DNA of 64,000 bases from Thalia democratica (taxonomy: Eukaryota), in assembly GCA_965202585.1 (NCBI GenBank), contig OZ241827.1, positions 58,280,001-58,344,000 of the forward strand, in the 5' to 3' direction. Below, piece after piece: positions 39,301-64,000 of this stretch. The position numbers and the translations under genes were made by a program. The notes beneath the pieces were generated by a model. That model made no database searches and was not told the origin of the DNA. It worked only from the letters and a program-made list of their open reading frames with translations. Numbering within the stretch: position 1 is the stretch's first letter; every line of letters starts with the position of its first letter.

Positions 39301-42300
39301 TTAAAATACAAACTTTTAAATAATAACTTGAGAATTTATTTTCAGACTTGCTCTTCATGCAGTACAGCTAAATAGTTTATTTAAATTATCCAAACAGCTC
39401 CCGAGGCACCGACGAATCTTGTCATAACAACTGACTCGGTCGTTTACACGAACGCTCAGCTGTCATGGTCAGCACCAGTTAACGGTAGCGTTGACAGTTA
39501 CCTGGTCAGTACAAGGCCCGAGGTTGAAGTTTCTGTAGGTAAGTGTATGATGTGTGAGTCACTTAAAAAAACTAGTAAGGAATTTTCGATTCATTTAACT
39601 TTTCCTAAAAACTTTTATTATAAAGTATTATTTTATAGTTCAAAAATTTTTATATAGTGTTTTTTTACTTCAAGAGTTTTGTTTTTTTTCAAGTATATTG
39701 AATCAATGAAATCAATTTCAACTACCTTATAAGAAAATTTATTCAAATATTTTTTCAGACAACAACTCGAGAACAGCAAGTATCGTTGGTCTTGTGCCAG
39801 GCCGAACTTACTCCTTCACCGTTACTTCTTTTTTCCAAGGAATTGAAAGCGCGGGCGCAGTACTAACACGTGAGATTTTTTTTAAAGTAAAATCTAAGCT
39901 TATCCAAAATATTAAAACACACAAAGTTATTTACAACGTAAAACACTAATTGATTCGTATATTGACTTTCTCAAACTGCAAAAAACGTACTACTTATACG
40001 AAAACGTGCTTAAATAAACAAAAACAACGAGTTGTTAATCGGTTGGATAATTTTAACCTACAACTGTAAATACACATTTAACAGATGTACTTCCAGTTAC
40101 ACCCACTCCTGTTACAACTACTCCGGAAACAACAACAGATGGTAAGTTTTGGCAAGTAAGAATAACAAAACAGAGTCTTTAGAGAAATCGAAGAAAAAAT
40201 GTACAATTTATACTTTAAATAAATGAATTAAGCAATTGTTTGAACTTAGTTTAAAAACATTGTTCTAGAAAAAAAAAATTTAATGTTGGGGTTCTTTTGT
40301 GATGAATAAGACAATTTGAAAAATTAAAAGTAAAAACAGTTGCACAAAAAACAAACTAATATCTTTCAATTTCACAATATAAAAGTCAACAACTTAAACT
40401 AATGTTCAGTTATACATTAGTATTCAAACTTTATATAATAGACATAAAAAAAAAACAATTATGAGTTTAATTTTAAGTTTAAAAATTAATCATAAAGAAT
40501 TAAAAATGAACTTAAAAACAAGTGTAGTGATAATTAACGCCTTCAAAAAACTTTACACCTCATAATGACAATAGGACCTATTATAATCACAACAACTGAG
40601 GATCCTTTGGTTACCACGACAACTGAAGAACCTGTTGTTACTACGACAACTGAAGAGCCTATTGTTACTACGACTACTGAAGAACCTGTTGTTACTACGA
40701 CAACTGAAGAGCCTGTTGTTACCACGACAACTGAAGAACCTGTTGTTACTACTACAACTGAAGAACCTGTTGTTACAACGACAACTGAAGAACCTGTTGT
40801 TACTACGACAACTGAAGAACCTGTCGTTACTACGACAACTGAAGAGCCTGTTGTTACTACGACAACTGAAGAGCCTGTTGTTACTACGACTACTGAAGAG
40901 CCTGTTGTTACTACGACAACTGAAGAGCCTGTTGTTACTACGACAACTGAAGAGCCTGTTGTTACAACGACAACTGAAGAGCCTGTTGTTACCACAACAA
41001 CTGAAGAACCTATTGTTACTACGACAACTGAAGAACCTGTTGTTACTACGACAACTGAAGAACCTGTTGTTACTACGACAACTGAAGAACCTGTTGTTAC
41101 TACTACAACTGAAGAACCTGTTGTTACAACGACAACTGAAGAACCTGTTGTTACTACGACAACTGAAGAGCCTGTTGTTACTACGACAACTGAAGAACCT
41201 GTTGTTACTACTAACACTGAAGAACCTGTTGTTACAACGACAACTGAAGAACCTGTTGTTACTACGACAACTGAAGAGCCTGTTGTTATAACGACAACTG
41301 AAGAACCTGTTGTTACTACTACAACTGAAGAACCTGTTGTTACAACGACAACTGAAGAACCTATTATTACTACAACAACTGAAGAACCTGTTGTAACTAC
41401 TACAACTGAAGAACCTGTTGCTACTACAACAACTGAAGAGCCTGTTGTTACTACGACAACTGAAGAACCTGTTGTTACCACAACAACTGAAGAGCCTGTC
41501 GTTACTACGACTACTGAAGAGCCTGTTGTTACAACGACAACTGAAGAACCTGTTGTTACTACGACTACTGAAGAACCTGTTGTTACTACGACTACTGAAG
41601 AGCCTGTTGTTACAACGACAACTGAAGAACCTGTTGTTACTACGACTACTGAAGAACCTGTTGTTACTACGACTACTGAAGAACCTGTTGTTACTACGAC
41701 AACTGAAGAGCCTGTTGTTACCACGACAACTGAAGAACCTGCGGTTACCACGACAACTGAAGGTACTGGTTAAGACTAAGGATGCACTTGCGGCTGCATG
41801 AAGAAGTATTGGCACACTTACTACAAAAGCTTGGTATCAAAATTAATAAAATCTAACAAAGGATTATTACAGATTGTTTGTTTTAACCACTAACAAAAGT
41901 TTTGTGTTCGCACTGATAAGCATGAATTTTTAGATGGCTAGTTTTAACTTTGTTTAACTTTGCCAGCTTAAAGTTGTGTTTTTACTAAAAAGTAGTTGTT
42001 AGATTTTTTTTGTTAACATAGATTAGTTTTACAGGTTTACTTCGTTGAAAGAGCGCTAGTGTATAGTAAGCTTTGACAAACATAAAACAACATTGATTAC
42101 ACTAACACTACAATCAGTCTTAACATATTTTCTAAAATTATTTGCTTTTTATACTCGTGACCAACCAAATGTTTGTTACAACTTAATGTATGTTTGTGTT
42201 CATGTGCATATCAAATTTGTTGTAAACACTTGCTTTTAAATGCATCCATGAATTGTGAAAAATAAGTATCTATGACGTTTAAGTTTTACTATCTACTTTT

Positions 42301-45114
42301 CAATCTTTTTTAATGATTTAGTAAAAAAAATTATATTAAATTTTAAATAAATTATCTAAAACAAAAACTCCAAACAGTCTACATATTAAGTTTGTTCATG
42401 TTCTTGAAACAATGCATGTTTTTATAAAATTTTGCTTAAATGAAAAATTTTTGTTTCCATAAAAAATAATAATACACAAATACTGCAACACTGAAAAGCT
42501 ACTTGAAACTAACAACAAAACAAAACAAACAAAGCTAAATTTTAAAATAGTGAATTTTTTTTTTAATATATATAATAATTAATATATATATAATATTTTT
42601 AAAGATATTCTTCTGTGAATTTTAACAACGTTGATTAAATTGTTTGCCAAAATCAAAAAATTAAGTGTAATTGCAAGTCTGTCTGTGTTATGTTCTACTT
42701 GTACTATTTTAATAAAGTTTACACTTTTTTTTCTGTGCACACCTAACCTTACAAAAACATCTTAGTAACTCCGGCTCCAGTCGTCTGCTCAGGATTTGAA
42801 GTTGCCCTCAACGGAACGTGTGTCGGTAAGTTTCACTTTTAACTATTTTTCTTAAACTTAAAACAATCACTGTCAACTTTGATGCTTGCAGAAACAAGCC
42901 GGTTCGAACTCACCATTACTTTCGATTCGACTTTCGACGAATCTCTCACAAACAGCAGTTCGAGCGGATACCTCGATTTCCTCGCCCGCTACAATCAGCT
43001 GGTAATAAACTAGAAAAAATATAACCTAGATATATATTAAAATCATTAACGTTTTTATTGCTGTAAAACATAAAGTCTAATCGACAGCTTTAATTTGTGT
43101 GTACAAGCAAACTAAACTTCACTGTGCAGTCTATTGAACAAAAGTAGAAAAAAACTTTTGAATAAAACATATAAATTATACTATTATTCGGACTGTCACT
43201 CTAACTTCCTTACTATACGACAAAAACTAAAAACAGGTGAAACAAATACTCGACACGCTCAACCTCAGCTACGTCAGCATCGACTCCGTGACTCTGTCGA
43301 GCGGAAGCGTCATAGCAACGTCTGACGTCATGGTCGTCAACGACGATTCGTTCACCACCACCGATGACGTCATAAGAAATATCAACGAGACGTTCGTCAA
43401 CGACCCGGCTACTTCCGGTTTGGCAGCCAGCATCAACGCGGTCGCTGTTGGCGTCATGGGTTTGTAACTATATATCGTCTATTAGAACTTGTGGTTCTTA
43501 ATAATTTATTTTCTAGTTCTGTTTTGCTTTCGTAAGCGTTAACCTAAACCGATAGAGCTGTTTATATAAACAACTAAACTAAATACATTCAAAACTTATA
43601 ATGAATAAAATTAATATTCGAAATCTATTCAGTTTCAAAAAATAAGATTTTTTACTGTTCGCTACTAAATCTAAAACGTTTCCAGCAATTGACGAGTGTT
43701 CAAGCTCTGATGCCAGATCTACGTGCAACTCAACTTTCGCCCAATGTTCCAACACAGACACCTTCCCTAATTTCGCTTGCAGCTGTAAGGATGGGTACAC
43801 AGACCTTGATACCACCAACCCCGGTACAAAGTTGGTAAAGTTTTTGCTTTTTATTGCTATTTTTTTACCTATTGTTTAAGACTGCTAAGTTAAGACCTGT
43901 TAAGTTTGGTATAAAGTAAAATCTGTAATACTATTACTTTTTTGATCAATACTACTTTTTATAGATTATTTTTATTTATTTTGTACTTGTTTAGAAAGTT
44001 ATAATAAGAGGTTGAAACGTAAGCAAAGTCTTTATTAGATATAAAGTTATAAGATAAAATATTAAAGTGCTTTATTTTCTAAGCAAAAATATTTTGTGAG
44101 TTCAAAAACTATTTTAGAATGCACATTTAAAACAAAACTTATTATTCAGCTGTGAGCTGACGCCCGTTGCAACAACATCAGAACCAGTAGAAACAACATC
44201 AGAACCAGTTGTAACAACCACTGCACCAGAAGCGACACCTTTTATCACTACAACTACTCCACTGAGATGTCCTGATGGGTTCCGTGACAGAGACCCAGAA
44301 AATCCCGGAACAGAGTAACTTACATTATTTTTTGCGTTAAAGTTATTAAATTTTTGTTCTATCATGGCGTATATACTTATGACATTGTTTGTTTTGATAA
44401 GAATTTTTAAATATAATTAAGTGCCTTTTTAATTCTAAACAATTGAAGTAAGTTAAAGGCATTTTGAGTAGTATTTTTCCACTTGTAACCAGTGTATATA
44501 ACTAGCTTTGTATACGCGAACAACTCTAAAACTTTGCCATGCACTTTATTTACTACGAGCACTAAACATAAACGCTTATGAATCAAACTGTCAAACAACT
44601 TTCAGCTGCGAGGATCAGTGCTTGTTGGACGGAGCTGACTACTGTCAGAACGGAGCGACTTGCACGAGGAGGCCCGCCGAAGAGAACCCGGTGTGCGTGT
44701 GCGGTACTTGGTACACTGGCGACCGTTGCCAGTCACTCAGTGAGTTCAATTGGACTTTGATAACTTTTAAATTAATTAGAAAAATCCTAAAGTATTTAAA
44801 AGAGTAAGTCATTGAATTTAAAAACTGTTATAAGCAAAAAGAATCAGGCACACTTGTGACCGCTGAAAGCTATTTTATTGAGTGTTTTTGAACATAATAT
44901 TTAGAACGTGTTTTATATAAAATAACTTGTTCCAAAAAACATAAAATCTTTAACTAGTTTGGAAATAAAATAAGTTTGTGAAAAAACACTTGTGAACTAA
45001 CTAAACGTATATTTAGTAAGTACAGCCGCCCTATGGACATTTGGAGTCAGAGGTCAGAATTTTTTTGTGTGAAATCATCATTCACACATTATAGATAAAT
45101 TCATTAAGTTTATC

Positions 45115-45150
<36 letters not shown>

Positions 45151-48100
45151 GTATACATCTATATATCACATTTTGTCATTAGTTCGAGCATTTGAGTTTA
45201 GGGACTTCACCTAGCCTACAAATATTCATATAGTATAAACGTATTAAAAGTAAAGTAACTAAAAAAAAATAATTTCGTTTACGTTTTAAAAGCTTAAATG
45301 CATATGCTGCTAAAAATTATTTTTGAAATGATGTAAAACTAGATAGTTAATCTAAAATATGTTTGAAATTGAATAAATTTCAACAAATTTACTTTAAACT
45401 TTATAAGAATAAATTTATCTTAAATATCTTCTGAGCTTTTTAATAACATAACGATCACAGTTCTTTTTTGGGTTTTTATTAACTAAAGAGTGCTTGTTTC
45501 ATTTTGTTACTAACCCACTAACATTTCTTTTATAAAATACTAAAAGCATTCTATAAAACCTTTTGATAATGTAAAAAAGTTAGCCGTTTAACATTTTTTC
45601 TTCTATTATTTTAAACTTAAAAAAAAGTGATAAGTGAGACGCTATAAAGCTGTAAACGCATATACTTGTTCTAAATCAATGTACATTTTGACTAATTAAA
45701 GGAACTGTGCACGTTTAAAACGATTGCTTCAGCTTAAAATCAATTATTGTGTTTTTGCTTTTAGAGTCTCGCTAATCATCTAAGCTTTTTAATGATGCGA
45801 GAAACTATTTTTTTAAACTTTTATTTACTATTTTCTGCATACTACTAAAACATTTTGTTCCTTTTTTAAATTTTACTGTTTTTGTTAACATTCATTTACT
45901 TACTAACAAATATTGTATTTAAGTGTTAGATTTTTTTGTGTGTTTTAAGTTTTTTAAAACATATATTTAGTTTTTGCTTTAAAAAAATAAATTAGAAAAT
46001 TTTTAAATCTTTGACCTCTTTTTGTTTGTTTTAACTTTTAAACACATATAATCAAATTTTTTTTGTCTTACACTTTCAATTTTTTTTATACTAAATGCAC
46101 GTTTTTTATAACTCTTTTTCTTACGACTAACAAAACTTTCAATTTTCTCGTTGACCCTACAGACCCCCTGCTGATCGGGCTGATATGTGGACTGGTGGTA
46201 GCTGTGGTTGTTATTCTCATGCTCACTGTTGCCGTCTGCACCAAGTAAACACAAAACTTCCAAAAATTCCGCCAAATTTGTAGTGGCATAGATGCTATAG
46301 TGCTTTGATTGAATTAAATTGCTCTACACTTTAGAAAGTCTTGTAGATTTAGTGCATGTTGTTTTGAGATTTTACTATTTACTTACAATTATTTTTTAAC
46401 ATTTAATTTGTTTAAAAATTATTCTAATAAAGTAATCATAGATCTACTTGCAATAATTATGATAATTACTTTCTTTACTGTTATATACTTTTTCATTTTA
46501 AATAAAATCGTACTGAAGAACCAAAAAACTAAACCAAAAGTTAACAAAAGGAATAAAGATAATTTTTACTAACAATCTTATTTCTAAGGTATTAAAAAAA
46601 TACAATTTTCGCGACAGACGACGGCTTATAAAAAATAAAGATATTTGTTTTAACCAAATACCAAAAACTACCAAATAGGTTTGTTTGAGTGTGTATTTTT
46701 CAAATTTGAACTTTGTCTTTAAAAATGCAAAGATTGTAGTTAAACCCATATTTTTGAATATATATAATTTGTGCAAACATTATTATTATTTTATGCATAG
46801 AAAAAAAAACTTTTATTGTAACAAAAAGTTTTAATGCAGTTTAGTAGCATGAATTAGTAATTGTCACAAAAAAAAAATTGAAAACTTAAGTTTGTTAAAA
46901 AAAACTAGTAGCTGTTTTTTCTTTAGTATTTTTCAAAGTTTTTAAACATTGTAGTATTTTTTATAGTTAAAAATAATTAATTGTTAAATCCACTTGTAGC
47001 AAATGGTTTTACATAATACAAATGATAAAAAATGTTTTAATTTTAAATTACAACATCTTTTAAGTCATAGTAACAGAAAATTCATACAAAACTTAAAATA
47101 TCTTCTATTTGACATTTTTTAACCTGAAATAGTTATAAAACCGTCTTTAACAACTTTATTTTTCATATTTCACCAGTATTAAAAAAGCAGTTTAGCATAG
47201 CATTAAAAAAAAAATTTAGTAGTTTTTATTTATTTTTACCTACTTATTTGTATCATATATTATATGTTGCATATACTATAGGTGTGTTGCATATACTGTA
47301 GATTTAAAAAAAATTCACAACAAGTCTAAATTAAATAATAAAAATATTTAGCAAGCTTTTAGACGTACAAAACTAAATTCCATCCCCACATCACTTTCTG
47401 TTTTTTTATTTAAAAGCAGCTAAACACGAAATAATTATTAATTATAGTAAAGTATCAATGGTTGTTTATTTTAACAAACTCTTATGATTCTTAGCTTTCA
47501 AAGTACAAAAAAAAATTCTTGTTGACTATTTCTGAAAGTTATTTTGTTGTAAAATTTTAGTAAGTTTAATTAAGCTTTGTATCAATTTTTTCATAGAAGA
47601 AAAATCTCAATAATTTTTAAACACAGTATTTTTTTCTCCACCAGACGGCGCGCTCGTAGCAGGAGTAGTTATTGGAATCCTGGCAGGAATTATCGTCATC
47701 GTGGCCATTATGGTGGTAGTGTGGGTTCGGGTTATTCGGACCGATTCCACCGCCTTCCTGCATGATGACACCACCAAACAGAGAGCTCAGCTTTACAGGT
47801 ATGTTTGTTATATATACATATTTTTTTTTGGATTGTTTCGATGACTTTGTATATGTTTTTATGGTGTTTTTTATCATCTTTTTAATTTTTATATTTTTTC
47901 AGTTTGTATACAAAATGTTTTATAAGTCTTATACTCAATTGTTAAGCAATATAAATCCTTTTGTTTGGCTGAAGAACTTTTGACCAATTTAAAGTGACAA
48001 AATCAAAAGTTGTCAAAAGCTTAAGAAATTTTAAGATAAACGGTAATAATTAGAATTATGTTTTACCATAAACTTAGCTTAAAATTTTAAAGTTATTTTT

Positions 48101-48261
48101 TGGAGTCAACTAAAAAATATTGATTGTAGGCAAAACCGTTAACTTAAATATAGAAAATTTAATTTAAACTCAAACAATTATTAGAAAAGTTTTTTTTTAG
48201 GCCAGCCGATATCAACGAATCAGGAAACGTCAAAACTGTTTCTCATCGTGACCTGGTGTGA
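9322..48261 (+). CDS. Giant EGF/NIDO/AMOP/VWD/FN3/PTS/SEA type I transmembrane mucin-like protein (77 exons with the TM-B1 ending, about 4,340 aa)
   Basis: Manually assembled chain of GT-AG exons with continuous phases. The summed length (13,026 nt) is divisible by 3. Starts with a signal-peptide exon and ends in a TM exon plus a stop. Domain evidence is listed in the sub-features. Confidence 0.88.
12537..16760 (+). CDS. Mucin N-terminal EGF block, mostly calcium-binding type. Exons 12537-12686, 13219-13381, 13759-14076, 15592-15830, 16145-16417, 16477-16590, 16647-16760
   Basis: Repeated D(I/L/V)(D/N)EC...C...CxNTxGSYxCxC motifs. Confidence 0.92.
16838..18267 (+). CDS. Mucin exon 10: 1.43-kb proline/acidic repeat domain (eight 42-43-aa units [43 protein letters not shown] plus degenerate flanks)
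   Basis: Acceptor TTAATAG at 16837 (phase 1). Continuous ORF to a phase-0 donor that matches the phase-0 exon at 18439-18484. Confidence 0.85.
18601..24703 (+). repeat. Tandemly amplified three-exon (A-B-C) non-calcium EGF cassette. A at 18601, 19647, 20848, 21763, 22887, 24247; B at 19006, 19836, 21034, 21950, 23169; C at 19248, 20291, 21435, 22342, 23643
   Basis: All exons are phase 1-1 and 114-132 nt long. The central copies are nearly identical (VDGCVA.GLECR.DQIC / [15 protein letters not shown] / [13 protein letters not shown]), and parts of their introns are too. Confidence 0.9.
24966..27414 (+). CDS. Mucin second EGF block. Exons 24966-25097, 25305-25424, 26103-26281, 26472-26682, 26941-27068, 27267-27414
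   Basis: DIDEC/DINEC EGF-Ca motifs and classical EGF cysteine spacing, in frame across GT-AG junctions. Confidence 0.9.
27656..29586 (+). CDS. NIDO domain. Exons 27656-27788, 28515-28744, 29067-29221, 29388-29586
   Basis: Motifs [35 protein letters not shown] and [19 protein letters not shown]. Confidence 0.85.
29717..30994 (+). CDS. AMOP domain. Exons 29717-29844, 30131-30245, 30388-30564, 30875-30994
   Basis: [10 protein letters not shown]...ACPPT...D..F, CF...TCCYD..GSLL and DCC..S....WC..YQQKRP, placed between NIDO and VWD as in MUC4-type proteins. Confidence 0.85.
31146..32930 (+). CDS. VWD domain. Exons 31146-31255, 31429-31639, 31699-31884, 32021-32200, 32452-32621, 32816-32930
   Basis: [59 protein letters not shown] and FAESWRV...SLFTY. 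Confidence 0.8.
33388..34026 (+). CDS. Cadherin-like/Ig-like domain followed by the start of an EGF. Exons 33388-33549, 33848-34026
   Basis: NTAPSF...[14 protein letters not shown]...GLFSWTP...FYAAD, then [10 protein letters not shown]. Confidence 0.7.
34268..38051 (+). CDS. Third EGF block (10 exons, 34268-38051)
   Basis: [11 protein letters not shown]...[12 protein letters not shown] followed by repeated DVNEC/DINEC/DIDEC/DVDEC EGF-Ca units. Confidence 0.9.
38160..39869 (+). CDS. Three fibronectin type III repeats (7 exons, 38160-39869)
   Basis: VTITWS...[13 protein letters not shown]; SITVSW...[16 protein letters not shown]; [16 protein letters not shown]...[15 protein letters not shown]. 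Confidence 0.85.
40575..41762 (+). repeat. Mucin PTS exon: about 44 tandem 27-bp units encoding EEPVVTTTT
   Basis: ORF 40565-41773. Acceptor ACAATAG at 40574 (phase 1). Donor at 41763, or 6 nt later at 41769. Confidence 0.93.
42892..43459 (+). CDS. SEA domain with intact G|SVI motif. Exons 42892-43011, 43237-43459
   Basis: [27 protein letters not shown]...[23 protein letters not shown] is at 43303-43314. Confidence 0.85.
43686..44739 (+). CDS. Juxtamembrane EGF region with a mini-PTS insert. Exons 43686-43830, 44150-44314, 44606-44739
   Basis: AIDECSS...CSCKDGY..NPGTNC; [17 protein letters not shown]; YCQNGATC...[13 protein letters not shown]. The last exon ends in phase 1. Confidence 0.88.
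45117..45150. repeat. (ACAT)n(AT)n microsatellite in a mucin intron
   Basis: Directly visible. Confidence 0.9.
46163..46678 (+). CDS. Anchor cassette TM-A: TM exon 46163-46244 ([28 protein letters not shown]) plus candidate tail exon 46618-46678 ([19 protein letters not shown])
   Basis: Phase-1 acceptor CCCTACAG before a hydrophobic helix; phase-2 donor GTAAAC overlapping an in-frame TAA. The tail exon has TACTAAC about 45 nt upstream of GCGACAG and gives a KRR stop-transfer. The tail exon is less certain than the TM exon. Confidence 0.7.
47645..48261 (+). CDS. Anchor cassette TM-B1: TM exon 47645-47798 ([51 protein letters not shown]) plus terminal exon 48201-48261 ([20 protein letters not shown])
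   Basis: Phase-1 acceptor after a long pyrimidine tract, GTATGT donor, in-frame phase-2 terminal exon, and AATAAA at 48316-48321. Confidence 0.85.
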
Positions 48262-49433
48262 ACGAGCTTTTGAATTTACAACAATTCCCACTAATTCTGT
48301 ATATATCTAAATTTCAATAAAATTGCACACTTATTCACGACTCATTTTTTTATAAGTAAAGTGTTAGTACATTTTTAAAATGAGCTAACCTATACGAAAA
48401 AAAGGAAAAAACTAAAATTAACTTTTCTATAATTAAAAAAAAATTTGTCTTTCCTAAAACTTTAAATACTTATAAAAAATAAACATTTTCTTGTTTTACT
48501 AAGTTTTGTAACTGTATAGTACTATACTTCTAAGATTCTAACATTTATGTTTTCAAAAGTATAAAAAAAAACTTCTGACAACCTGCAACTTACTTAATTT
48601 GTTAAAAGAAACAACTCCCTTGGTAAAAAGTGATGTTTTTGAATTTTGTTTGAAACAAAAACTTGATTTCGTATAGCTAAAATAGCTCAGTTAGGAAGTT
48701 TATAAACTATTGCTTTGATTCTTCTGAAAGTAGAACATTTTAAGCAAAGTATTTTTGATTTAAAAAATACTAAAGTTTTTCAATAAAGAAAAATATAGCA
48801 AATTATTATGTTTGCACTAAGGCGTAAGTAAAATTTTACTTTGAGCCCATTTAAAAATGTTCATTTAATAACCTATAGATCAGGGTTTCCCAAAGTGGGC
48901 GATATCGCCCCCCTGGGGGCGATTTTAGTAAGTCGGGGGGCGATAATTAGTAAGGGGGCGAAAGGGTGGGCGATAACTAGTAAGGGGGCGATTTTAAAAT
49001 TTTGGGCAGTTATAAAATTTTTACTTTTTATCTTGCTTTTTTACTAGTTTTAGCTTGCTATTAAATATTTGACTCTGAGGTAAAACTTAAACAAAAAAGT
49101 TTATTTTGTTTATGTAAAATGTAGAAAAAAAACCGATTGCTTATGATTCCTACTTTCAAGTAAATTACATATTTTCATTCACGCCGTTAGTTGAAATAAA
49201 GTTTTAGCACAAGAACATCTGTGGTATTTTCATTCAGATATTTTTTTACTCAAAAATTACATAAATCATAGACGATCGGAATCCATCTCGACATTTTTTA
49301 ACCTGAGATATATGTTATTTGTTATCATAAATGGTTTATAAAAATCTATGGTGTCTATTATTAAGTATCACCTCATGATATTTCCAATTTTTTTTTGAAA
49401 ATTTACCAAGTTAGACTAAGAAATAAAACTATA

Positions 49434-49515
49434 CAGGGTTGCCAATTTACCTAGAAACCTGGAAAAACCTGGAGTTTGACAATTTAGGCAAAAAAAAACC
49501 TGGAAAAATCTGGAA
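49434..49515 (+). mobile_element. Solo end of another hAT-like element
   Basis: CAGGGTTGCCA terminus followed by AACCTGGAAAA subterminal repeats. I did not find a matching opposite end in the window. Confidence 0.5.
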
Positions 49516-49597
49516 TGTTTAACAATTTTGAATTATTAAAAAGTAAAATTTCGATTTGTCACAATAAAGCTATCATATAGATAAAAATATGAATCCC

Positions 49598-49944
49598 TTT
49601 GAGGCAGATCTTTTTAAAGTAAACGACTTACAGGAAACGTTCTCAGACTTACAAACTGACCTTGAACTTAAAGTAAATTTTTCCAAAGAACGATCTGAAA
49701 GCTTTTAGACTCAACAAAAACTAAGACAAAAGCTTCCAATCATTTAAGAGAAATTTAGATTGTTCTTTATAGCTTTTCCTTCTAGCTATGGTATTAAAAA
49801 AACTTTCAGTTCAGTTATTAACATTTTGAGCAAAAGATTTTATCTAGATATTTGTAAAGGAGGTGACTTAAAGCTTTATTTTACTGATTTAGAATCAGAT
49901 TAGAAAAACTTGCAAGAATTCATGAACCTCATCCTTCGCATTAT
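49598..49944 (+). pseudogene. Relic of the C-terminal dimerisation domain of a Buster/Charlie-type hAT transposase
   Basis: Translates to ...ESF*...EKFRLFFIAFPSSYGIKKTFSSVINILSKRFYLDICKGGDLKLYFTDLESD, then after a frameshift LEKLARIHEPHPSH. This matches the AFPxSY...FS...RGDLRL...HPSH end of this family. In-frame stops are present. Confidence 0.8.
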
Positions 49945-50121
49945 ATTTGAATTCAGTAGCAGACAGCATTTTATGAAAGTTTTTTTATTTTTTTGATCTT
50001 TTAAAATACTTCTTGTTTAACCTGGGTTTGTATTGTATTTAAGTAGTCTTTTTATATTAAAAATTCTTTTAAGTTATTTATTCTATAACAGGTTTGCATA
50101 ATGCCTAATTAATATTAATTA

Positions 50122-50440
50122 CGGTAGACTTTCTCTTGAGTTCGCATTTTTTACCTAAAAAAAGTGCAAATTTATATTTTCTTAAGTTTAAGATAAAAAA
50201 AAGTCTAACACTAACTAAGTATCAATAAAACAAAAAAGAATATAATATTTTACAGCTCATATAGATCTATTTTTTAAATGAATGTTTGTTTTATGTTTTA
50301 GTTGATTTCATGTTTATTCATAACATTATTGCATATAAAATATTGAAATTTGTCATTTTGTAAAAATAAATGATAATGCATTTTTGAGTTCGCCTTTTTT
50401 CGATTTTGTTCAAAGTGCGAACTTAAGCGGAAGTCTACTG
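50122..50440. mobile_element. Degenerate Tc1/mariner (pogo/Tigger-like) MITE, about 319 bp
   Basis: Imperfect TIRs of about 28 bp (CGGTAGACTTTTCTCTTGAGTTCGCATT versus the reverse complement CAGTAGACTTCCGCTTAAGTTCGCACTT). TA precedes the left end; the right TA is mutated. Confidence 0.65.
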
Positions 50441-52053
50441 AAACTATTAGATGGTTTATGTTTTAAAAATGTTAATAGTTTTTTTTGACCTGGTTAATTT
50501 TGTAGTTTATATTTGTCGTTTTACATTACACTAAAAGTTTTTAAAGCATAGTGATTAAAATATTTGTTTGAAAATTATTTATTTAATCTTGTTTAATCTG
50601 TTTATTTAATAAATAAAAAAATCTTGATAACCATTAAAGTTTTTATGTCAAAAAAGATTTTTTGGTTTTGAAAGAGTATAGATTTAAGGTCTTTATTTGA
50701 GATGACTTAAAATTTTTCATCAAAAAGATTCTTAAACTCATTTTTATTTTCTAACTTGATTTATTATTGTTAAGAAATTCATATATTGAGGATTTTCAAA
50801 CTATTAATACAACTGTTTTTTGTTTTATCTTAATTCAAAGTATCTTAGCAATTAGAATGTGTTGTTTATTTTAATATTTCAACACTAGCTTTTAGTTTTT
50901 CACTATTTTTCTCTGATAAATTATTATAGGCTAATAGCTAGAAAAAAAAATAAACACAATTAAATAAGCCATCAAAAAAAATGCTACAGTTACAAAACAA
51001 AATTTTAACCTAATTAACAGTTTTTTTTTAATTGATTACTATCTGTTCACAGAATTAACTGTAAAACATTTGATTTTTTTTAAATTTAAATTAAGATAAA
51101 AATTTTTGTTAGAATTAAGGTTTAGTTTCCTTAAGGTTATTCCAAGTCAAATACTATTTCATGGTATTCTACTACGCAACATATATTTTAAAATGTTTAA
51201 AATTAAAATTTTAACTTTATAGCTAACTTGCTTATAATATATCTTCGCATTGAAATTTATAATTTTACTGCATTTACTGAAGCTGTTGATGAAACTACTT
51301 TTAATGTGAGATAATCAATCAGTCGGTCAAACTTCCTCAAACTAGATCAGAAATTATGTTTTAATATTTATTTCATTATGTGTAAAATAAACTGTTCATT
51401 CTTTTATAGTTTTTTAATCTCTGGTATAGTAATTTTACAATATGCCTGTTTATAAAAAAAAAATTAAGTATTTTGTGCGGCTTAAATAAGTTACTTAGTA
51501 TTAACTACTAAATGTCCAAAATTTGTTATATGAGAGATTATTACAATGCCAGGTTTCAGTTAAGATTTTAGATGGGTAACGTACGGTTCGGATTCAGTCA
51601 AATTTCGACCCGCTAATTAACTTGAAAACTACTTTCTGAAAAATAAATAAAATTAGTTTTTTGATACTTAATATTTTGAAATACGCTTTCAACTTGGGTA
51701 TCAGTTCACAATAGTATTTCTTAGATCACAATAATACTAAACATTTTATTACAATTTCCCTCCAGTTTTTTTATTTTCTTATACGTTATTTTTTTAAATT
51801 ATGCAGCCCGCAATCTTATTTTTTAACGAGTTGAAACTAGAAAAGACTTTTTAGTAAATATGAATTGCTGACTACAAAAGTTGTCCACCACTAACCTAAA
51901 AGTTTTATTAGTTTTGAAAGAATTCATATTTAAAAAGGATTGATTACAAGTTACTAAAGAATTTTTAATAATTAAGTATTTTTATACACTTTACTGGGCT
52001 TATAAGAAAATAACTGTAGATTATTTTCTAAAGCCCTGTAAACTACTTTAAAC

Positions 52054-55000
52054 GGGAACGGGTCACTTTTGCACGAGCGTCACTTTTGCACGAGCGTCAC
52101 TTTTGCACGAAGGGACACTTTTGCACGAGCGTCACTTTTGCACGAGGGGTCACTTTTGCACGATGGGACACTTTTGCACGGAGACACCTTTGCACGAGCG
52201 TCACTTTTACACGAGGGGACACTTTTGCACGGCGTCACTTTTGCACGGTCGTCACTTTTGCACGAGGGGACACTTTTGCACGGCGACTCTTTTGCACGCA
52301 GGGTCACTTTTGCACGAGTGGACACTTTTGCACGGCGACACTTTTGCACGGAGGGTCACTTTTGCACGAGGGGACACTTTTGCACGGCGACTCTTTTGCA
52401 CGGCGTCACTTTTGCAAGAGGGGACACTTTTGCACGGCGTCAGTTTTGCACGAGGAGACATATTTTCACGGCGACATTTTTACACGATGACAATTTTTTT
52501 GGCAGCTTTCTTGCACAACGACACTTTTGCACGGAGAGTCACATTTGCACGAGGTGACACTACTGCACTTTCGTCATTTTTGCACGGCGTCATTTTTGCA
52601 CGATGGGACATTTTTGCACGGCAAAATTTTTTCACGATGACAAATTTTACGGCAGCTTTCTTGCACAACGACACTTTTGCAGGGAGGTACATTTTTGCAC
52701 GAGGGGACTCTTTTGCACGGCTTCTTTTTTGCACGAGGAGAAACTTATGCACGCAGTCATTTTTCCAAGAGGAGACACTTTTTCTAGGCGACATTTTTCA
52801 TAATGAAAATTTTTTACGGCAGCTTTGTTGCACAACGACACTTTTGCACAACGTCACTTTTTTAAGATCAATTTTTACACAGCGACATTTTGGCACTATG
52901 ACTTTTTCGCACGGAACATCAATTTTGCATGCAGGCCAATTAAAAGTCTTTTTTAGCTAGTATCAAATCTGTAGCATAAAAAGAAACTGAAAACTAAAGT
53001 TTTATAACATATTTTAAAAATTGATTGTGTAGGTGGGAATCATGTAAAAATCATGTAGTTTTTATCATTCCAGTTAAATCGAAGTCACAGCATCAATATT
53101 ATTACCAAATATTAAGAATGTTTTTTTATATTTAAGGAAAAAAACTAAAGATTTAAGATTTTAAACAGTAAAAATTGATGTTAGAAACAAACTAACGAGA
53201 AAATAAATTAAAGTTATTTATAAAAGATTTATACAAGGGACAAAAAATTTGATTTATTTAGGAAATAGGATATAAAAATACATTAAGTGTAGGTAAATTG
53301 TTCTAGTTAACTTTGAATTTTAATATACTAATCAACAACTATGCCTTTTTATATAGTTTACTATACGGTTACAAGTTTATCGTCCACAAAAAGAAAAAAA
53401 ATTAATAAAAATTCTTAATTTATTAAAACAAAGATAAAAACATAATTTGATATAAAATTTATAGGTTAGCATAGAGAGCAAAATTTTAATCACAAACTTA
53501 TACTTATTTACGCTTTGATGTAGAACGATCAACATCAAATATTTAAATGCATTGACTAACAACAAAAATAAAAACCTAACGCTCCAAAGACATTAACAAT
53601 AGACCGGCCGGATAAATAATCATTAATACATTGATATATGAGTCATCATTAATAGAGTAAAGGTGCTGCTAATAAAATTGAACTATAAACTAAGCTAAAT
53701 CCTAAAATTAAATCAATAGTTGATAAAAATTACTTAACTAATTTATTTTTAATACGGTTAAGAACTTAAAAATTTTGTTAACCATAATATAACACAGATA
53801 AAACGTTTTTAACTTTAATCGAAATTAAATAAAATTTTTGCAAGATACTAATTCATTAGGAAGTTTGCACCATATTTCAACTGACCAATATAAAAAAAAG
53901 AACTTTACCAAGCCTCATTGTTGAAATATTGCAGCGGTTTTCCTTGAACAGTTTCTATTTGGTTAATATCTTTATTTTATTATGTATAACAAATTGGTGT
54001 TTTATATTTTAACTTAGGACGAATTTAAAAGAGAAAAAAAAAGCTTATTAAGACTGTTCATATCCGGAGACTGAATGAATGAAATGTGGTTGTTTTATAA
54101 TGAAATTTAAATATAAAGCTTTTTTTTTGAAGTTTTACGTAGAACAATATAATAACGTACCACATTTCTTTAATTAATGTTTATAATCTAAATTTAAATA
54201 AAGTAGATGAATGAATTTAATCTCTCAATAAATTATCTTACAAACTAAGTTTTGATCAACTATATCTTCAGTGCTTCAATAAATTTAAAAAGATATGTGA
54301 CAGTCATGGAAAATAGCATTTAAACAATTGAAACAGATGAATAAGATTTTTTTAATTTAAATATAAACAATTTAGAATACTTTAAACAAAACCAATCTGT
54401 ATTTCGTTAATTAAAAAAAAAAAAAAAAACTTAATTTAGTAAGGCTTTAAAACACGAATCTTAAGTATTATGTTTTACTTTTATTCTCCTGATGTTAAAA
54501 CTAGCATTATATGTTTGTTAAACAAATATTTTAATTTTAAACAATTGTTAAATTGGTAAAATAAAAATAATAATTAGTTTATGAAGTGTAAAGGTATTTA
54601 AGATTTTACTTGATGTTTATTTTTAGTTTACTTTTTAACTCAGCGTGAGAATAAAAAGAGCAGTAAAATAGCTTATTTTTCATGAGTTAAACTTGGATTA
54701 TTTCATTACTTTAATGTTGCATAACCGTGATAAGCTAATGAGAGAGTAACATTTTGAAGTTTGAACTTATGTTTATTCAAAGTATCAAGAGATACTAATA
54801 CCAGCACCACGTGATCATGAAATAAGCCAATGAGAGAGTAACATTTGCAAGATCAAATACGCCGTACAAAAGAGTCCCCTCGTGCAAAAATGTACCTCCG
54901 TGCAAAACGTCCCCTCGTGCAAAAGTGACTTTCCGTGCATAAGTGTCGTTGTGCAACAAAGCTGCCATAAAAATTTGTCATCGTGAAAAAATGTCGCCGT

Positions 55001-55603
55001 GCAAGAGTGTCTCCTCGTGCAAAAATGACCCTGCATGCAGAAAAGTATCCTAGTGCAGAATGACGCCGTGCAAAAGAGTCATCTCGTGCAAATGTGACTC
55101 TCCGTGCAAAAGTGTCGTTGTGCAACAAAGCTGCCGTAAAAAAATTGTCATCGTGAAAAAATGTCGCCGTACCAAAATGTCTCCTCGTGCAAAAGTGGCG
55201 CCGTGCAAAAGTGTCCCCTCGTGCAAAAGTGACCCTCCGTGCAAAAGAGTCGCCGTGCAAAAGAGTCGTCGTGCAAAAGTGTCCCCTCGTGCAAAAGTGA
55301 CCCTCCGTGCATAAGAGTCGCCGTGCAAAAGTGTCCCCTCGTGCAAAAGTGACCCTGCGTGCAAAAGTGACGCTGTGCAAAAGTGTCCCCTCGTGCAAAA
55401 GTGACCCTGCGTGCAAAAGTGACGCCGTGCAAAAGTGTCCCCTCGTGCAAAAGTGACGCTCGTGCAAAGGTGTCGCCGTGCAAAAGTGTCCCTTCGTGCA
55501 AAAGTGACCCCTCGTGCAAAAGTGACGCTCGTGCAAAAGTGTCCCTTCGTGCAAAAGTGACGTTCGTGCAAAAGTGACGGTCGTGCAAAAGTGACACCCA
55601 CCC
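52054..55603. mobile_element. Mutator/Foldback-like element, 3,550 bp, with internally repetitive inverted arms of about 0.75-0.9 kb
   Basis: 9-bp TSD ACTTTAAAC (52045-52053 and 55604-55612) and GGG termini. The left arm is an array of 15-16-bp units with core TTTTGCACG; the right arm is the inverse CGTGCAAAA array. The AT-rich interior has no long ORF. Confidence 0.88.
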
Positions 55604-56327
55604 ACTTTAAACATAGCCCAAAAGTGCGTGCATAAGAAGTACCGGACTGAATTACATTTCAAACACAACTTTTTTGGCTTAAAATTTTGTACTCAAGAGA
55701 AAAACTACTTTGTAAAATCGTGGGGGGCGATTTTTTTTCAAATTTCTGAAAAGGGGGCGATTTAGTAAATAAGTTTGGGAAACCCTGCTATAGATATTGG
55801 TTACTTAAATATAACTTTTAATGCTCATAGTATGTTTTACACCTACACTAATGACCATAATAACTAAATAACAACTTATCTAGTTTTCTGACTTTTGACT
55901 AGTTTTATTTAGATGATATACACTTTATCCAAATCTTTTCACCTACTAATTTGAAATGACATAAAACTTGTACTAGAGTGAAATTGCTTTTAGTAAGCTA
56001 TTTTAAAAATGGTTGATTTTAAAAAATTGGTGCAGAAACAATTTTAATAAAGTTTGATTATTATTAATGTAATAGAAATTTGTAATTTTTATTATTATAA
56101 CTAAATATAATAAAGATTATAGCAAAAGAAAATTTATGATAAAAATGTATTTAATTATAATTAAGAAAATTGTGTGAAGTGGAAAATAAATAAAAATTGG
56201 AGTTTGTTAGCATAGTAACAAAATGTTATTAAAAATATAAAAATTATAAAATGCATTTGAAATGGCAAATTACGTAAGAGAGTTTTTTTTAAGAAAAAAA
56301 AAAATTTCGCTCAGTATGAGTTTGGCT

Positions 56328-58602: not shown

Positions 58603-60026
58603 AAGTTTAATTAAGCTGTGTATCAATTTTTTCATAGAAGAAAAATCTCAATAATTTTTAAACACAGTATTTTTTTCTCCACCAGACGGCGCGCTCGTAG
58701 CAGGAGTAGTTATTGGAATCCTGGCAGGAATTATCGTCATCGTGGCCATTATGGTGGTAGTGTGGGTTCGGGTTATTCGGACAGATTCCACCGCCTTCCT
58801 GCATGATGACACCACCAAACAGAGAGCTCAACTTTACAGGTATGTTTGTTTTATATATATTTTTTTTTTTGGATTGTTTCGATGACTTTGTATATGTTTT
58901 TATGGTGTTTTTTATCATCTTTTTAATTTTTATATTTTTCAGTTTGTATACAAAATGTTTTATAAGTCTTATAATCAATTGTTAGCCAACATAATTGCTT
59001 TTATTTGGCTGAAGAACTTTTTGACCAATTTAAAGTGACAAAATCAAAAGTTGTCAAACGCATAAGAAATTTAAGATAAACGATACTAATTAGAATTATG
59101 TTTTACCATAAACTTAGCTTAAAATTTTTAAAGTTTCACTTTTTTTGGAGTCAACTAAAAAATATTGATTGTACGCAAAACCGTTAACTTAAATACAGAA
59201 AATTTAACTTAAACTCAAACAATTATTAGAAAAGTTTTTTTTTAGGCCAGCCGATATCAACGAATCAGGAAACGTCAAAACTGTTTCTCATCGTGACCTG
59301 GTGTGAACGAGCTTTTGAATTTACAACAATTCCCACTAATTCTGTATATATCTAAATTTCAATAAAATTGCACACTTATTCACGACTCATTTTTTTATAA
59401 GTAAAGTGTTAGTATTAAAACATTTTTAAAATGAGCTAATCTATACGATAAAAAGAAAAAAATTAAAATCAACGTTTTTATTATTCCAAAACAACTTTGT
59501 CTTTCCTAAAACTTTAAATACTTAGTTTTATTTTTATATAGTACTTAATAAGTTTTTAGTAAGTTTTATAACTGTATAGTACTATATTTCTAAGATTCTA
59601 ACATTTATGTTTTCAAAAGTATAAAAAAAAACTTCTGACAACCTGCAATTTACTTAATTTGTTAAAAGAAACAACTCCCTTGGTAAAAAGTGATGTTTTT
59701 GAAATTTGTTTGTTTGAAACAAAAACTTGATTTCGTATAGCTAAAATAGCTCAGTTAGGAAGTTTATAAACTATTGCTTTGATTCTTCTGAAAGTATAAC
59801 ATTTTAAGCAAAGTATTTTTGATTTAATAAATACTAAAGTTTTTCAAAAAAGAAAAATATAGTAAGTTATTTTGTTTGCACTAAGGCGTAAGTAAAATTT
59901 TACTTTGAGCCCATTTGAAAATATTCATTTAATAACCTATAGATATTGGTTACTTAAATATAACTTTTAATGCTCATAGTATGTTTTACACATACACTAA
60001 TGACCATAATAACTAAATAACAACTT
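58603..60026 (+). repeat. 1.42-kb segmental duplicate of 47562-48880 plus 55796-55877
   Basis: Colinear similarity from AAGTTTAATTAAGCT to ACAACTT. Copy 1 is interrupted by the hAT element; copy 2 has the empty site AATAACCTATAGATATTGG. Confidence 0.92.
58686..59306 (+). CDS. Anchor cassette TM-B2: duplicate TM exon 58686-58839 and terminal exon 59246-59306, encoding the same protein as TM-B1
   Basis: Only two exon differences from TM-B1 (ACC>ACA, CAG>CAA), both synonymous. Splice sites, stop and AATAAA (59361-59366) are intact. Confidence 0.75.
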
Positions 60027-61535: not shown

Positions 61536-61973
61536 CTACCGTTCGCCACGGATGCGACCGGCAAGCTGCATGTCCTTGGGCGAAATGGTCACTCTGTTGG
61601 CGTGGATGGCGCACAGGTTTGTGTCCTCGAACAATCCCACCAGGTAGGCTTCGGCGGCTTCTTGAAGAACGCTGATTGCTGCCACTTGAAAACGCAGGTC
61701 GGTTTTAAAACGCTGTGCGATTTCGCGAACGAGGCGCTGGAAGGGCAACTTGCGGATCAGAAGCTCAGCTGACCTCTGGTACCTGCGTATCTCGCGAAGA
61801 GCCACTGTTCCTGGGCGGTAGCGATTGGGCTTCTTGACGCTGCCAATTTTACTAACTCTGGGTGATCTTTTACCTCTAGGATTTTTGACACCTCCGACTT
61901 TGTTACCTCCTGGTGGCCCATTACCTCTGTTACCTTCTTCTTCAAATCTACGGGGCCTCACTTTTACTTTCAT
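61536..61973 (-). CDS. Divergent histone H3 variant (H3.3-derived fold, novel N-terminal tail), 145 aa
   Basis: Unmistakable histone fold: [21 protein letters not shown]...[17 protein letters not shown]...[26 protein letters not shown]. Uninterrupted ORF. Confidence 0.93.
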
Positions 61974-62076: not shown

Positions 62077-63784
62077 CAGACTTGTATTTCGGTTGCCTAA
62101 GTGAAGTTTAAAATATAATTATCTTTAATTTTTTTTCGAATAAAAATTGTGCAATAAGCTGTTATTAATTTTTGAATTCTAGTATGTATCTTAATAAATT
62201 GTACCATGGTGAGCAATCTTTAACACAAAAAAAAGTTTTTCACATGAAACTAAAAAGCTTAAAAACAAATAGTCCTACTTTATAAAACTTAAGAATGCAG
62301 GTAAATAAGTTATTGATGCTAATATAAACCTACTCCTAAAGAGTAACCATTTAGTTCAAAGTACTACTTGATAAAATAAATTTATTTAAAAGTTGACTCT
62401 TTCTGCCCAGACTGAACCTAATCTTACTTCGTTAAAGGTTATATACAAATGTAGTAAAATATAACACTTATCATCATTGATAAATTAAAGTTTGCATTTT
62501 GTCAACTCTGAAAACAGATTTGGTAGTTTATATAAAAAAACAGCAATGAATATATATTATAACTTTTTTGTCTAAAATTAAATACTTTTTTATAAATTAT
62601 TTTGCTGGAATAAGAAATACTGTAACATTGATTAGGGAGTTTACCAATCAAATGGTATGACTATTAAATAGCCTTCAGTGAGAAAAACTTATGAAACTTA
62701 CTATATACCTGCAACTAAGTAAAATTAAAAGAAAATAAAAACACCATTACAAAGTACACAGTAAATAAAAAATATTTTTGTTTACAACCTTCAAATTAAA
62801 TACCACGTTTTTCAAAAGGATTTTGTAACATAACATTTTAACTACTAACTTAAACAGTTTAGTCTTACCATAGATACACTTTTAGTATTTTCTTAATACT
62901 TTTCATAAATGACAAAACTAAACAGCTTATTTTATTTATGTAGACGAGTTTACTCAGAGTATAATATTTTACACTTACTGCGCTTAAAATACTTTTGTTG
63001 TACTTGTAGAGCTTAAAAAAGTATACATTTAATTATTTTTTGCGTTTGTACTTTGTCCAGTCTTTTTTTAAAGCGTTCAATTTGAAAACTTTACAAAATG
63101 TATCTACAGTTTAAAATGTATTATACAGTGTTATACAAAATAAGTATCGGTTATAAATTGTAAATGTTTTTATAAAAATCAGGAAACTGTTACTTTTGTA
63201 TTTGATTCTAAAACACCATTACAATTGAATATGTTGACTAAAGTACTCGATCCTTTAACAAAACATTTTTTAAATTAAGCACTTTAGATTTTTTACATCA
63301 TACGTCCACATATTATTTTGTTTATTAAAAACACCGTAAGTTATATAAATATCGCCACAATATTTACTAAATCATATTCGTATACATTCTAGCTGTATCA
63401 ATTTATAACGTAAAAAGTAACATTTAATTTGAACAGTATACAAATCTAATAAATTAAACGATTTAGTTTTACCAAGTAAAAACAAATGTATAAAACAAAA
63501 AATATTTAAGTGCTTTAAAAGTGTTTAAGTTTTAAATAACTATTTTTTATCAAATTTCCTACAGTTTATAGATAAGTAAAACTAATTCAACAATCTTTAA
63601 AGCATTACTATCACAAAATTCCTGGAAAATTAGTTTTAAATTTGGGAGTTTATTACTTGCAACTCTCTTATTAAAAATGTAATAAAAATTTTACAACTAC
63701 CTTTTTTTACTATATTTATTCTAAACAGTTAGTATCAAAGAAACATTTAAATAAACAAATGATATGCAATAAAAACGGTTCACT

Positions 63785-63931
63785 ATCATCTCTAACTCGA
63801 TCATTTCTAATCCGATCAATTCTAACTCGATCACTTCTTACCCGATCACTTCTAACCCGATCATTTCTAACTCGATCACTTCTAATACGATCACTTATAA
63901 CCCGATCACTTATAACCCGATCATTTCTAAC
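63785..63931. repeat. 15-bp tandem array (ATCACTTCTAACCCG), about 10 copies
   Basis: Nine full degenerate units and one partial unit are directly visible. Confidence 0.9.
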
Positions 63932-64000
63932 AATTTATAGTTCAACAAAAGTTCATGATTTATATTTTGATATTTATAGTTGTAAATATCAGGTTTTTAT

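Follow-up and report, generated by a model that had tools for sequence, protein, structure and literature searches.

How can one gene give the same ectodomain two different membrane anchors and two different tails? The question was raised by a locus in a window of 64,000 nucleotides (nt) of Thalia democratica DNA (GenBank assembly GCA_965202585.1, contig OZ241827.1, positions 58,280,001 to 58,344,000 of the forward strand). All coordinates below are those of the window. The locus is best explained as the 3' end of a gene for a large type I membrane glycoprotein with EGF, FN3 and SEA-like domains and mucin-type repeats. Two exons with hydrophobic segments, TM-A and TM-B (transmembrane exons A and B), lie downstream of its last EGF exon. 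The initial annotation of this stretch had taken them for mutually exclusive exons. Very probably they form a frame-switching arrangement, in which the cassette exon TM-A swaps both anchor and tail by way of a dual-coding exon, TM-B, with both readings conserved.

Frame A is the reading of the TM-B exon with TM-A included and frame B is the reading with TM-A skipped. The peptides that end the two isoforms are called tail A and tail B. The exons concerned are as follows (UTR, untranslated region).

44606..44739, plus strand: last EGF exon, 134 nt, constitutive, ending in phase 1, from translation and RNA contigs
46163..46244, plus strand: TM-A, 82-nt cassette exon, phase 1 to phase 2, coding a 25-residue helix
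47645..47798, plus strand: TM-B exon, 154 nt, constitutive and, from the comparisons below, dual-coding, phase 1 to phase 2, found in all RNA runs
47646..47765, plus strand: overlap proper, 39 frame-A codons and the frame-A stop TGA at 47763-47765, with a second TGA directly after
48201..48261, plus strand: terminal coding part, used by the skipped isoform only, end of tail B (...SHRDLV), stop at 48259-48261
48262..48335, plus strand: 3'UTR, AATAAA at 48316-48321, end of a contig of run X2 at 48330

Splicing of the Transmembrane Exons

RNA evidence was taken from five marine metatranscriptome runs holding the gene, as assembled contigs and unitigs mapped on the locus. Contig pieces covered 43236-43458, 43685-43830, 44150-44314 and 44606-44739 and halted 2 nt past 44739 at a graph branch. 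Only four junctions were seen in the region, all of them GT..AG: 44739 to 46163, 46244 to 47645, 44739 to 47645 and 47798 to 48201. The exon coordinates and phases of the initial annotation were exact, with the EGF exon ending in phase 1 and both TM exons running from phase 1 to 2, and all four of the exon boundaries it gave were used as junctions in the RNA contigs.

A 139-nt unitig held 44712-44739, 46163-46244 and 47645-47673 in one molecule and was found in runs X1, X2 and X3 (two samples). A 57-nt unitig joined 44712-44739 directly to 47645-47673, skipping TM-A, in X2 and X3. Mapping of this unitig in X1 covered the TM-B half only. These lengths (28 + 82 + 29 and 28 + 29) are the exact expectation for a cassette-exon bubble in a graph of k = 31. 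TM-A was also skipped in a 277-nt contig of run X8, which ran from the EGF exon to TM-B to the terminal exon. The depth of the TM-A joints was 27.1 in X2, 11.2 in X3 and 10.4 in X1, and the joint 47798-48201 was present in all four runs of one mapping set. In X9, a run with very high expression, the letters flanking TM-A were the end of the EGF exon before it and the start of TM-B after it.

Since TM-A and TM-B stand together in one unitig and TM-A is missing from another unitig and a contig, TM-B is constitutive and TM-A is a non-triplet cassette exon, which transcripts either carry between the EGF exon and TM-B or lack. The two are not mutually exclusive. The 82 nt of TM-A are not divisible by three, and inclusion and skipping were both expressed in X2 and X3, with skipping expressed in X8. 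Rough TM-A inclusion by unitig depth was 74%, 68% and 51% in X1 to X3 and 0% in X8. The included form was more abundant than the skipped form in X1 and X2. In two samples 26-49% of unitig depth belonged to the skipped form, which was the sole form in X8.

The sole junction out of TM-A was 46244 to 47645. Three other fates had been proposed for this exon, and none was found among the RNA contigs. No contig continued past 46244 into a tail-less stop, and no joint led directly to 48201. The third fate was a join to the following candidate exon.

46618..46676, plus strand: candidate exon (KRRLIKNK...), unsupported, with no joint into it and essentially zero RNA depth

RNA depth was zero over 46349-46545 and next to nothing over 46253-46776.

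Word depths in X9 reached several hundred, and several alleles or a sibling lineage were present. In one allele the EGF exon ended with Glu in place of Gln, and TM-A carried five differences.

Two Protein Readings of One Exon

With TM-A skipped, the junction codon is followed by the TM-B helix and by a tail B of about 45 residues, which is near neutral and ends in HRDLV. With TM-A included, the TM-A helix is followed by Lys and then by the 154-nt exon read one base later for 39 codons. The resulting tail A has 40 residues and is strongly basic (isoelectric point 11.7, net charge about +9). Its motifs are SSYWNP, GGSVGSG and a C-terminal SDRFHRLPA. The dual-read overlap was 117 nt, with at least 60 nt taken as the threshold, and both frames had proper stops (A at 47763-47765, B at 48259-48261). 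Both hydrophobic segments were of membrane-helix grade (grand average of hydropathy, GRAVY, 2.9), as had been proposed for them.

Skipping of TM-A would give helix TM-B with tail B, and inclusion would give helix TM-A with tail A. Inclusion would shift the downstream frame by +1, and the same DNA would encode either a second helix or a basic tail. Inclusion of both exons had been regarded as a forbidden frameshift. It was instead an observed product, and the frameshift is taken as the working mechanism because its reading was kept in two other species. The proposal of an anchor switch held in so far as one gene has two helices and two tails; the Dscam-type mechanism of mutual exclusion attached to it did not.

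The frame-A stop sits 33 nt upstream of the last exon junction. Junction-dependent decay should leave an mRNA with a stop at this distance stable, and the included mRNA should therefore escape it. The position of the stop should in this way spare the included isoform, which was abundant and had a conserved tail, and both its escape from decay and its translation are predicted.

The two isoforms would share an ectodomain and differ in helix and tail, and they may be sorted differently or bind different partners. Tail B resembles a putative PDZ ligand of the [DE]-x-hydrophobic type ([DE]-x-V; DLV, EIV). The D-L-V end, which had been pointed out in the initial annotation, was conserved as E-I-V in a relative. 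When the frame is moved on by one base, codons for Arg, Gly, Ser (AGY), Tyr, His and Asn that end in U or C give Val, Ala, Gly, Ile, Met and Thr. The odd Arg, Gly, Ser, Tyr and His make-up of tail A is probably what the +1 frame of Val, Ile, Ala and Gly codons permits.

Conservation of Both Frames

Relatives were found by protein search with the SEA-like exon and were proteins from ocean transcripts. Protein P0005 belongs to another species; P0008 shares about 42% identity with it. Both proteins end in an EGF domain, a TM-A-like helix, Lys, the same basic tail and a stop. The tail A blocks SSYWNP, GGSVGS and SDRFHRLPA were invariant to the stop among the window, P0005 and P0008. Transcript L001 is the DNA for P0008 and was the only relative with DNA; none is on record for P0005.

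Frame 3 of L001, on the same bases, encoded a TM-B-like helix and went on through the frame-A stop and into the nominal 3'UTR. About 30 further codons of frame B were open there, and the frame closed with ...GNV..VSHREIV at the aligned stop. Similarity between the window and L001 was gone past the frame-B stop. DNA identity between the two was 61% in the EGF exon, 72% in TM-A, 79% in the overlap, 63% after the frame-A stop and 59% in the terminal exon. Four-fold degenerate sites were identical at 12/16 positions in the overlap and at 11/32 in the ectodomain (Fisher P = 0.013), where they were counted within identical residues. Judged by the ectodomain figure, synonymous sites are saturated against L001.

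The constraint on each frame was compared with that expected from the other. When the frame-A protein of L001 was fixed and its codons were redrawn, frame-B identity averaged 12.7/39 and peaked at 24 over 20,000 trials, against 28 observed. When frame B alone was constrained, frame-A identity had a mean of 12.8/39 and a maximum of 22 in 20,000 trials; the observed value was 27. Single-frame constraint was rejected (0/20,000 in each direction), and therefore the conservation of neither frame is a by-product of the other. By this test on one species pair, the 154-nt exon is judged to be a conserved dual-coding exon with both frames under selection.

None of the population variants seen in the RNA at 47651 (C>G), 47696 (T>C) and 47742 (C>A) altered the frame-A protein. 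Their frame-B effects were Ala to Gly, Val to Ala and silent, respectively. Within TM-A, two further variants (46200 A>C and 46212 T>C) were likewise silent. Single-exon protein searches with the TM-B frame and with the shifted-frame open reading frame (ORF) gave no match, with a tool limited by its length window and by having no spliced references. Two scans of metagenome contigs, one by the tail alignment and one by a DNA pattern of two conserved blocks, also gave no match, in a collection evidently without short transcript contigs.

Alternative Explanations

Three other explanations of the locus were weighed. Mutual exclusion of the Dscam exon 17 type would place either TM-A or TM-B in each mRNA, with TM-A ending by read-through, at 46618 or at 48201. 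The phase arithmetic permits it and the skipped form joining the EGF exon to TM-B exists, but it is scarcely credible, as TM-A exits only to 47645 with neither of the other joints and no read-through depth, the exon lengths differ with homology undetected, and the reading with both exons included was found in transcripts of two relatives. If only the included isoform with TM-A and the basic tail were functional, skipping would be splicing noise, and codon composition would have produced the TM-B reading by chance. The catalogued transcripts of both relatives are indeed the included form, and codons for Arg, Gly, Ser and Tyr readily give hydrophobic +1 frames. This explanation was nevertheless considered very unlikely, because the frame-B identity of 28/39 was never reached in the resamplings that preserved frame A and the skipped form was a substantial part of unitig depth in two samples and the sole form in X8. 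Frame B of L001 also runs on through the nominal 3'UTR for about 30 codons before the aligned stop, with the shared end ...GNV..VSHR[DE][IL]V and no similarity after it. The converse, that only the skipped isoform with TM-B and the DLV tail is functional and that inclusion of TM-A is an unproductive poison-exon event, draws on the early stop that inclusion makes relative to the TM-B frame. It was judged extremely improbable, with the helix and 39-residue tail conserved right up to the last residue in both P0005 and P0008, a frame-A identity of 27/39 that no trial reached with frame B alone preserved, the frame-A stop only 33 nt from the last junction, and the included form the more abundant in X1 and X2.

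The frame-switching cassette with its dual-coding exon is the preferred reading, and several points weigh against it. The RNA sequences were Logan unitigs and contigs, all short and drawn from metatranscriptomes of mixed wild samples and not from the reference animal; none was a full-length read of either isoform, and unitig depth is a poor gauge of isoform ratio. The first 29 nt of TM-B are identical to those of a second copy of the exon at 58686 (described below), and the junction unitigs fit either copy. Of the joins from 44739 that had been proposed, those to 46163 and 47645 were seen, and one to 58686 is indistinguishable from the latter. The dual-frame test was made on the one DNA pair of window and L001. 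P0005 is available as protein only, its codon-compatibility test was weak, and the measure of being 'TM-compatible' was without discrimination. The skipped isoform in the relatives is deduced from frame conservation and was unseen there as RNA. An open shifted frame alone is non-significant (P = 0.51 given the TM-B protein).

The openness of the shifted frame was also tried as evidence and dropped, as synonymous resampling of the TM-B protein left at least 39 codons open in 51% of trials.

A stronger form of the preferred reading, judged about as likely as not, is that the locus is a conserved and dedicated swap device. The exon would have been selected in two frames for a long time, and the 82-nt helix cassette would act as a frame selector through which cells re-address one giant ectodomain to different membrane domains or partners. 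In such a device PDZ scaffolds could be one class of partner, for tail B, and other binders would serve tail A.

Comparison With Known Systems

Dual-coding by non-triplet splicing has been described for exon 8 of Caenorhabditis elegans tnt-3 (PMC13247117) and for human CDKN2A and GNAS (PMC13160074). Cassettes that shift the frame and in this way produce dual-coding regions form a recognised class, marked by a signature of wobble conservation (PMC13247117, PMC13160074). As in that class, a non-triplet cassette sets the frame of a shared downstream exon here and both isoforms are expressed. Conservation at the wobble positions of the overlap is unusually high, and one reading gives a C-terminal peptide that is disordered. 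The locus has every feature of the class that was tested. It differs in that the cassette supplies a replacement helix, with both isoforms staying type I membrane proteins, and in that one frame of the shared exon gives a membrane helix and its other frame a soluble basic tail. Among the examples of those two papers, the alternative frame mostly truncates the protein or swaps domains for disorder (PMC13247117, PMC13160074).

Exons 17.1 and 17.2 of Drosophila Dscam1 are alternative transmembrane exons thought to direct subcellular localisation (PMC8787164). The present gene is like Dscam1 in having two alternative membrane helices. It is unlike Dscam1, in which the exons are strictly exclusive and use one frame, in that the two exons here are non-exclusive and the second helix exon is re-read in the other frame. 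Exactly one exon of the cluster per mRNA was not what was found, as the 139-nt unitig and the transcripts of the relatives hold both. Neither did the exons appear as homologous duplicates of similar length (82 against 154 nt, P = 0.14).

An origin of TM-A as a duplicate of TM-B was not supported, at the same P value, the local alignment being no better than codon shuffles.

Transmembrane mucins include proteins with SEA-EGF-TM ends (MUC3/12/13/17 type) and proteins with NIDO and VWD domains (MUC4 type). The present gene is like these in its Thr-rich tandem repeats and in the order of SEA-like domain, EGF, Thr-rich linker, EGF, single helix and short tail. Tail B, with its possible PDZ-type C-terminus, is a further likeness. 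It is unlike them in that the SEA, NIDO and VWD matches were all below Pfam thresholds and in that FN3 domains and many calcium-binding EGF exons lie upstream. The likeness is by domain layout.

To our knowledge no switch that overprints a transmembrane helix and a tail has been described. Full-text literature searches found no example of a transmembrane-swap dual-coding exon, which is weak evidence of novelty and not proof. Dual-coding by frame-shifting splicing is usually taken to mean truncation, decay or disorder, whereas the two products here would each be a complete type I membrane protein. A structured membrane helix would come from one of the overlapping frames, which shows the reach of overprinting under double constraint. 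The locus offers a natural case of helix codons (GUN, AUN, GCN and GGN) dictating the make-up of the +1-frame peptide (Arg, Ser, Gly, Tyr and His), and of anchors and tails steering the sorting of mucin-like proteins. Annotation pipelines would drop the 'frameshifted' isoform and real proteins would be lost. The gene model at this locus should hold two C-terminal isoforms and possibly a micro-exon form.

Candidate Micro-Exon

P0005 has 13 extra residues between the EGF domain and TM-A. The best translated match to them in the intron was the following segment, which had a score of 56, was near-identical and had been overlooked in the initial annotation.

45017..45052, plus strand: micro-exon candidate, 36 nt, phase 1 to 1, with ag| and |gt borders, predicted

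Use of this segment would swap the junction Asn for a 13-residue juxtamembrane insert. It had no RNA depth in the five runs, and it is predicted to be an optional micro-exon in T. democratica.

Second Copy of the Module and Inserted Element

The segment 47562-48880 is repeated downstream at 58603-59944.

58603..60026, plus strand: second module copy, with an acceptor region of 83 nt, the counterpart of the putative dual-coding exon at 58686-58839, an intron, a terminal exon (start 59246, stop codon 59304-59306), UTR and flank

Divergence between the copies was 1.2% in the 83-nt acceptor region, 1.3% in the dual-coding exon, 0% in the terminal coding part, 0% in the UTR, 6.4% in the intron and 9.8% in the downstream flank. 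The two exon differences between the copies were both silent, and that at 47742 (C/A) was silent in both frames. Because the divergence is uneven and the exon differences are silent, copy 2 is either used and under selection or kept alike by gene conversion. At 47742 all RNA runs carried the letter of copy 2, and the DNA run X4 likewise showed only that letter.

A refinement of the preferred reading would have the two copies share the work, for example by isoform or by tissue. Copy 2 keeps its acceptor, both frames, terminal exon and UTR at a divergence of 0-1.3%, against 6-10% in intron and flank, and the RNA contigs carry its letter at 47742. Such a division is nonetheless unlikely. The same letter alone in X4 may be a common allele of both copies, the encoded proteins would be identical, and gene conversion can explain the exon identity.

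The 3' flank of copy 1 contains a 6,907-bp insertion (48881-55787) bounded by terminal inverted repeats of 14 bp that match perfectly (CAGGGTTTCCCAAA...). Its target site is duplicated over 8 bp (CTATAGAT), at 48873-48880 and 55788-55795. The empty site was seen in copy 2 (59930-59955). The insertion looks like a hAT-type DNA transposon. DNA-run depth was about 1000 at its left end, and the element is therefore high-copy. Arrays of a unit of about 17 nt (CACTTTTGCACGAG...) lie within it at 52060-52930 and 54860-55595, inverted to each other. The long ORFs on both strands at these arrays are an artefact of the repeat.

Upstream Domains

The window is eukaryotic, with GC-rich exons amid introns of about 25% GC. 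Upstream of the membrane-proximal part, this strand has exons for numerous EGF modules (many calcium-binding EGF exons are among them), FN3 domains, a SEA-like region and a further EGF. Collinear Pfam matches to NIDO (13.9 and 16.3 bits) and VWD (15.1 bits) were obtained on exon fragments and were sub-threshold. The Pfam scan of the single exons of the window gave no match to AMOP or to SEA. In P0002, a relative with 88% identity, FN3 was significant in Pfam and SEA scored 20.3 bits (Pfam cut-off 26.4) over profile positions 3-92 of 106.

An ORF at 40565-41773 encodes about 44 copies of a 9-residue Thr-rich unit, and its presence in the mRNA is a candidate feature. In P0002 the last FN3 domain is followed by a short Thr-rich linker and then by the SEA-like region, without the 400-residue Thr-rich repeat exon. 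This exon (40565-41773) may be alternatively spliced or species-specific.

Other Features of the Window

An Rfam search of the window gave no match. A large exon at 16855-18312 codes a Pro-rich, acidic higher-order repeat. An intronless ORF at 61536-61973 on the minus strand encodes a histone H3-like protein with a long, unusual N-terminal tail rich in Gly, Lys and Pro. At the window end, 63770-63946 is a tandem array of about 12 copies of a 15-nt unit.

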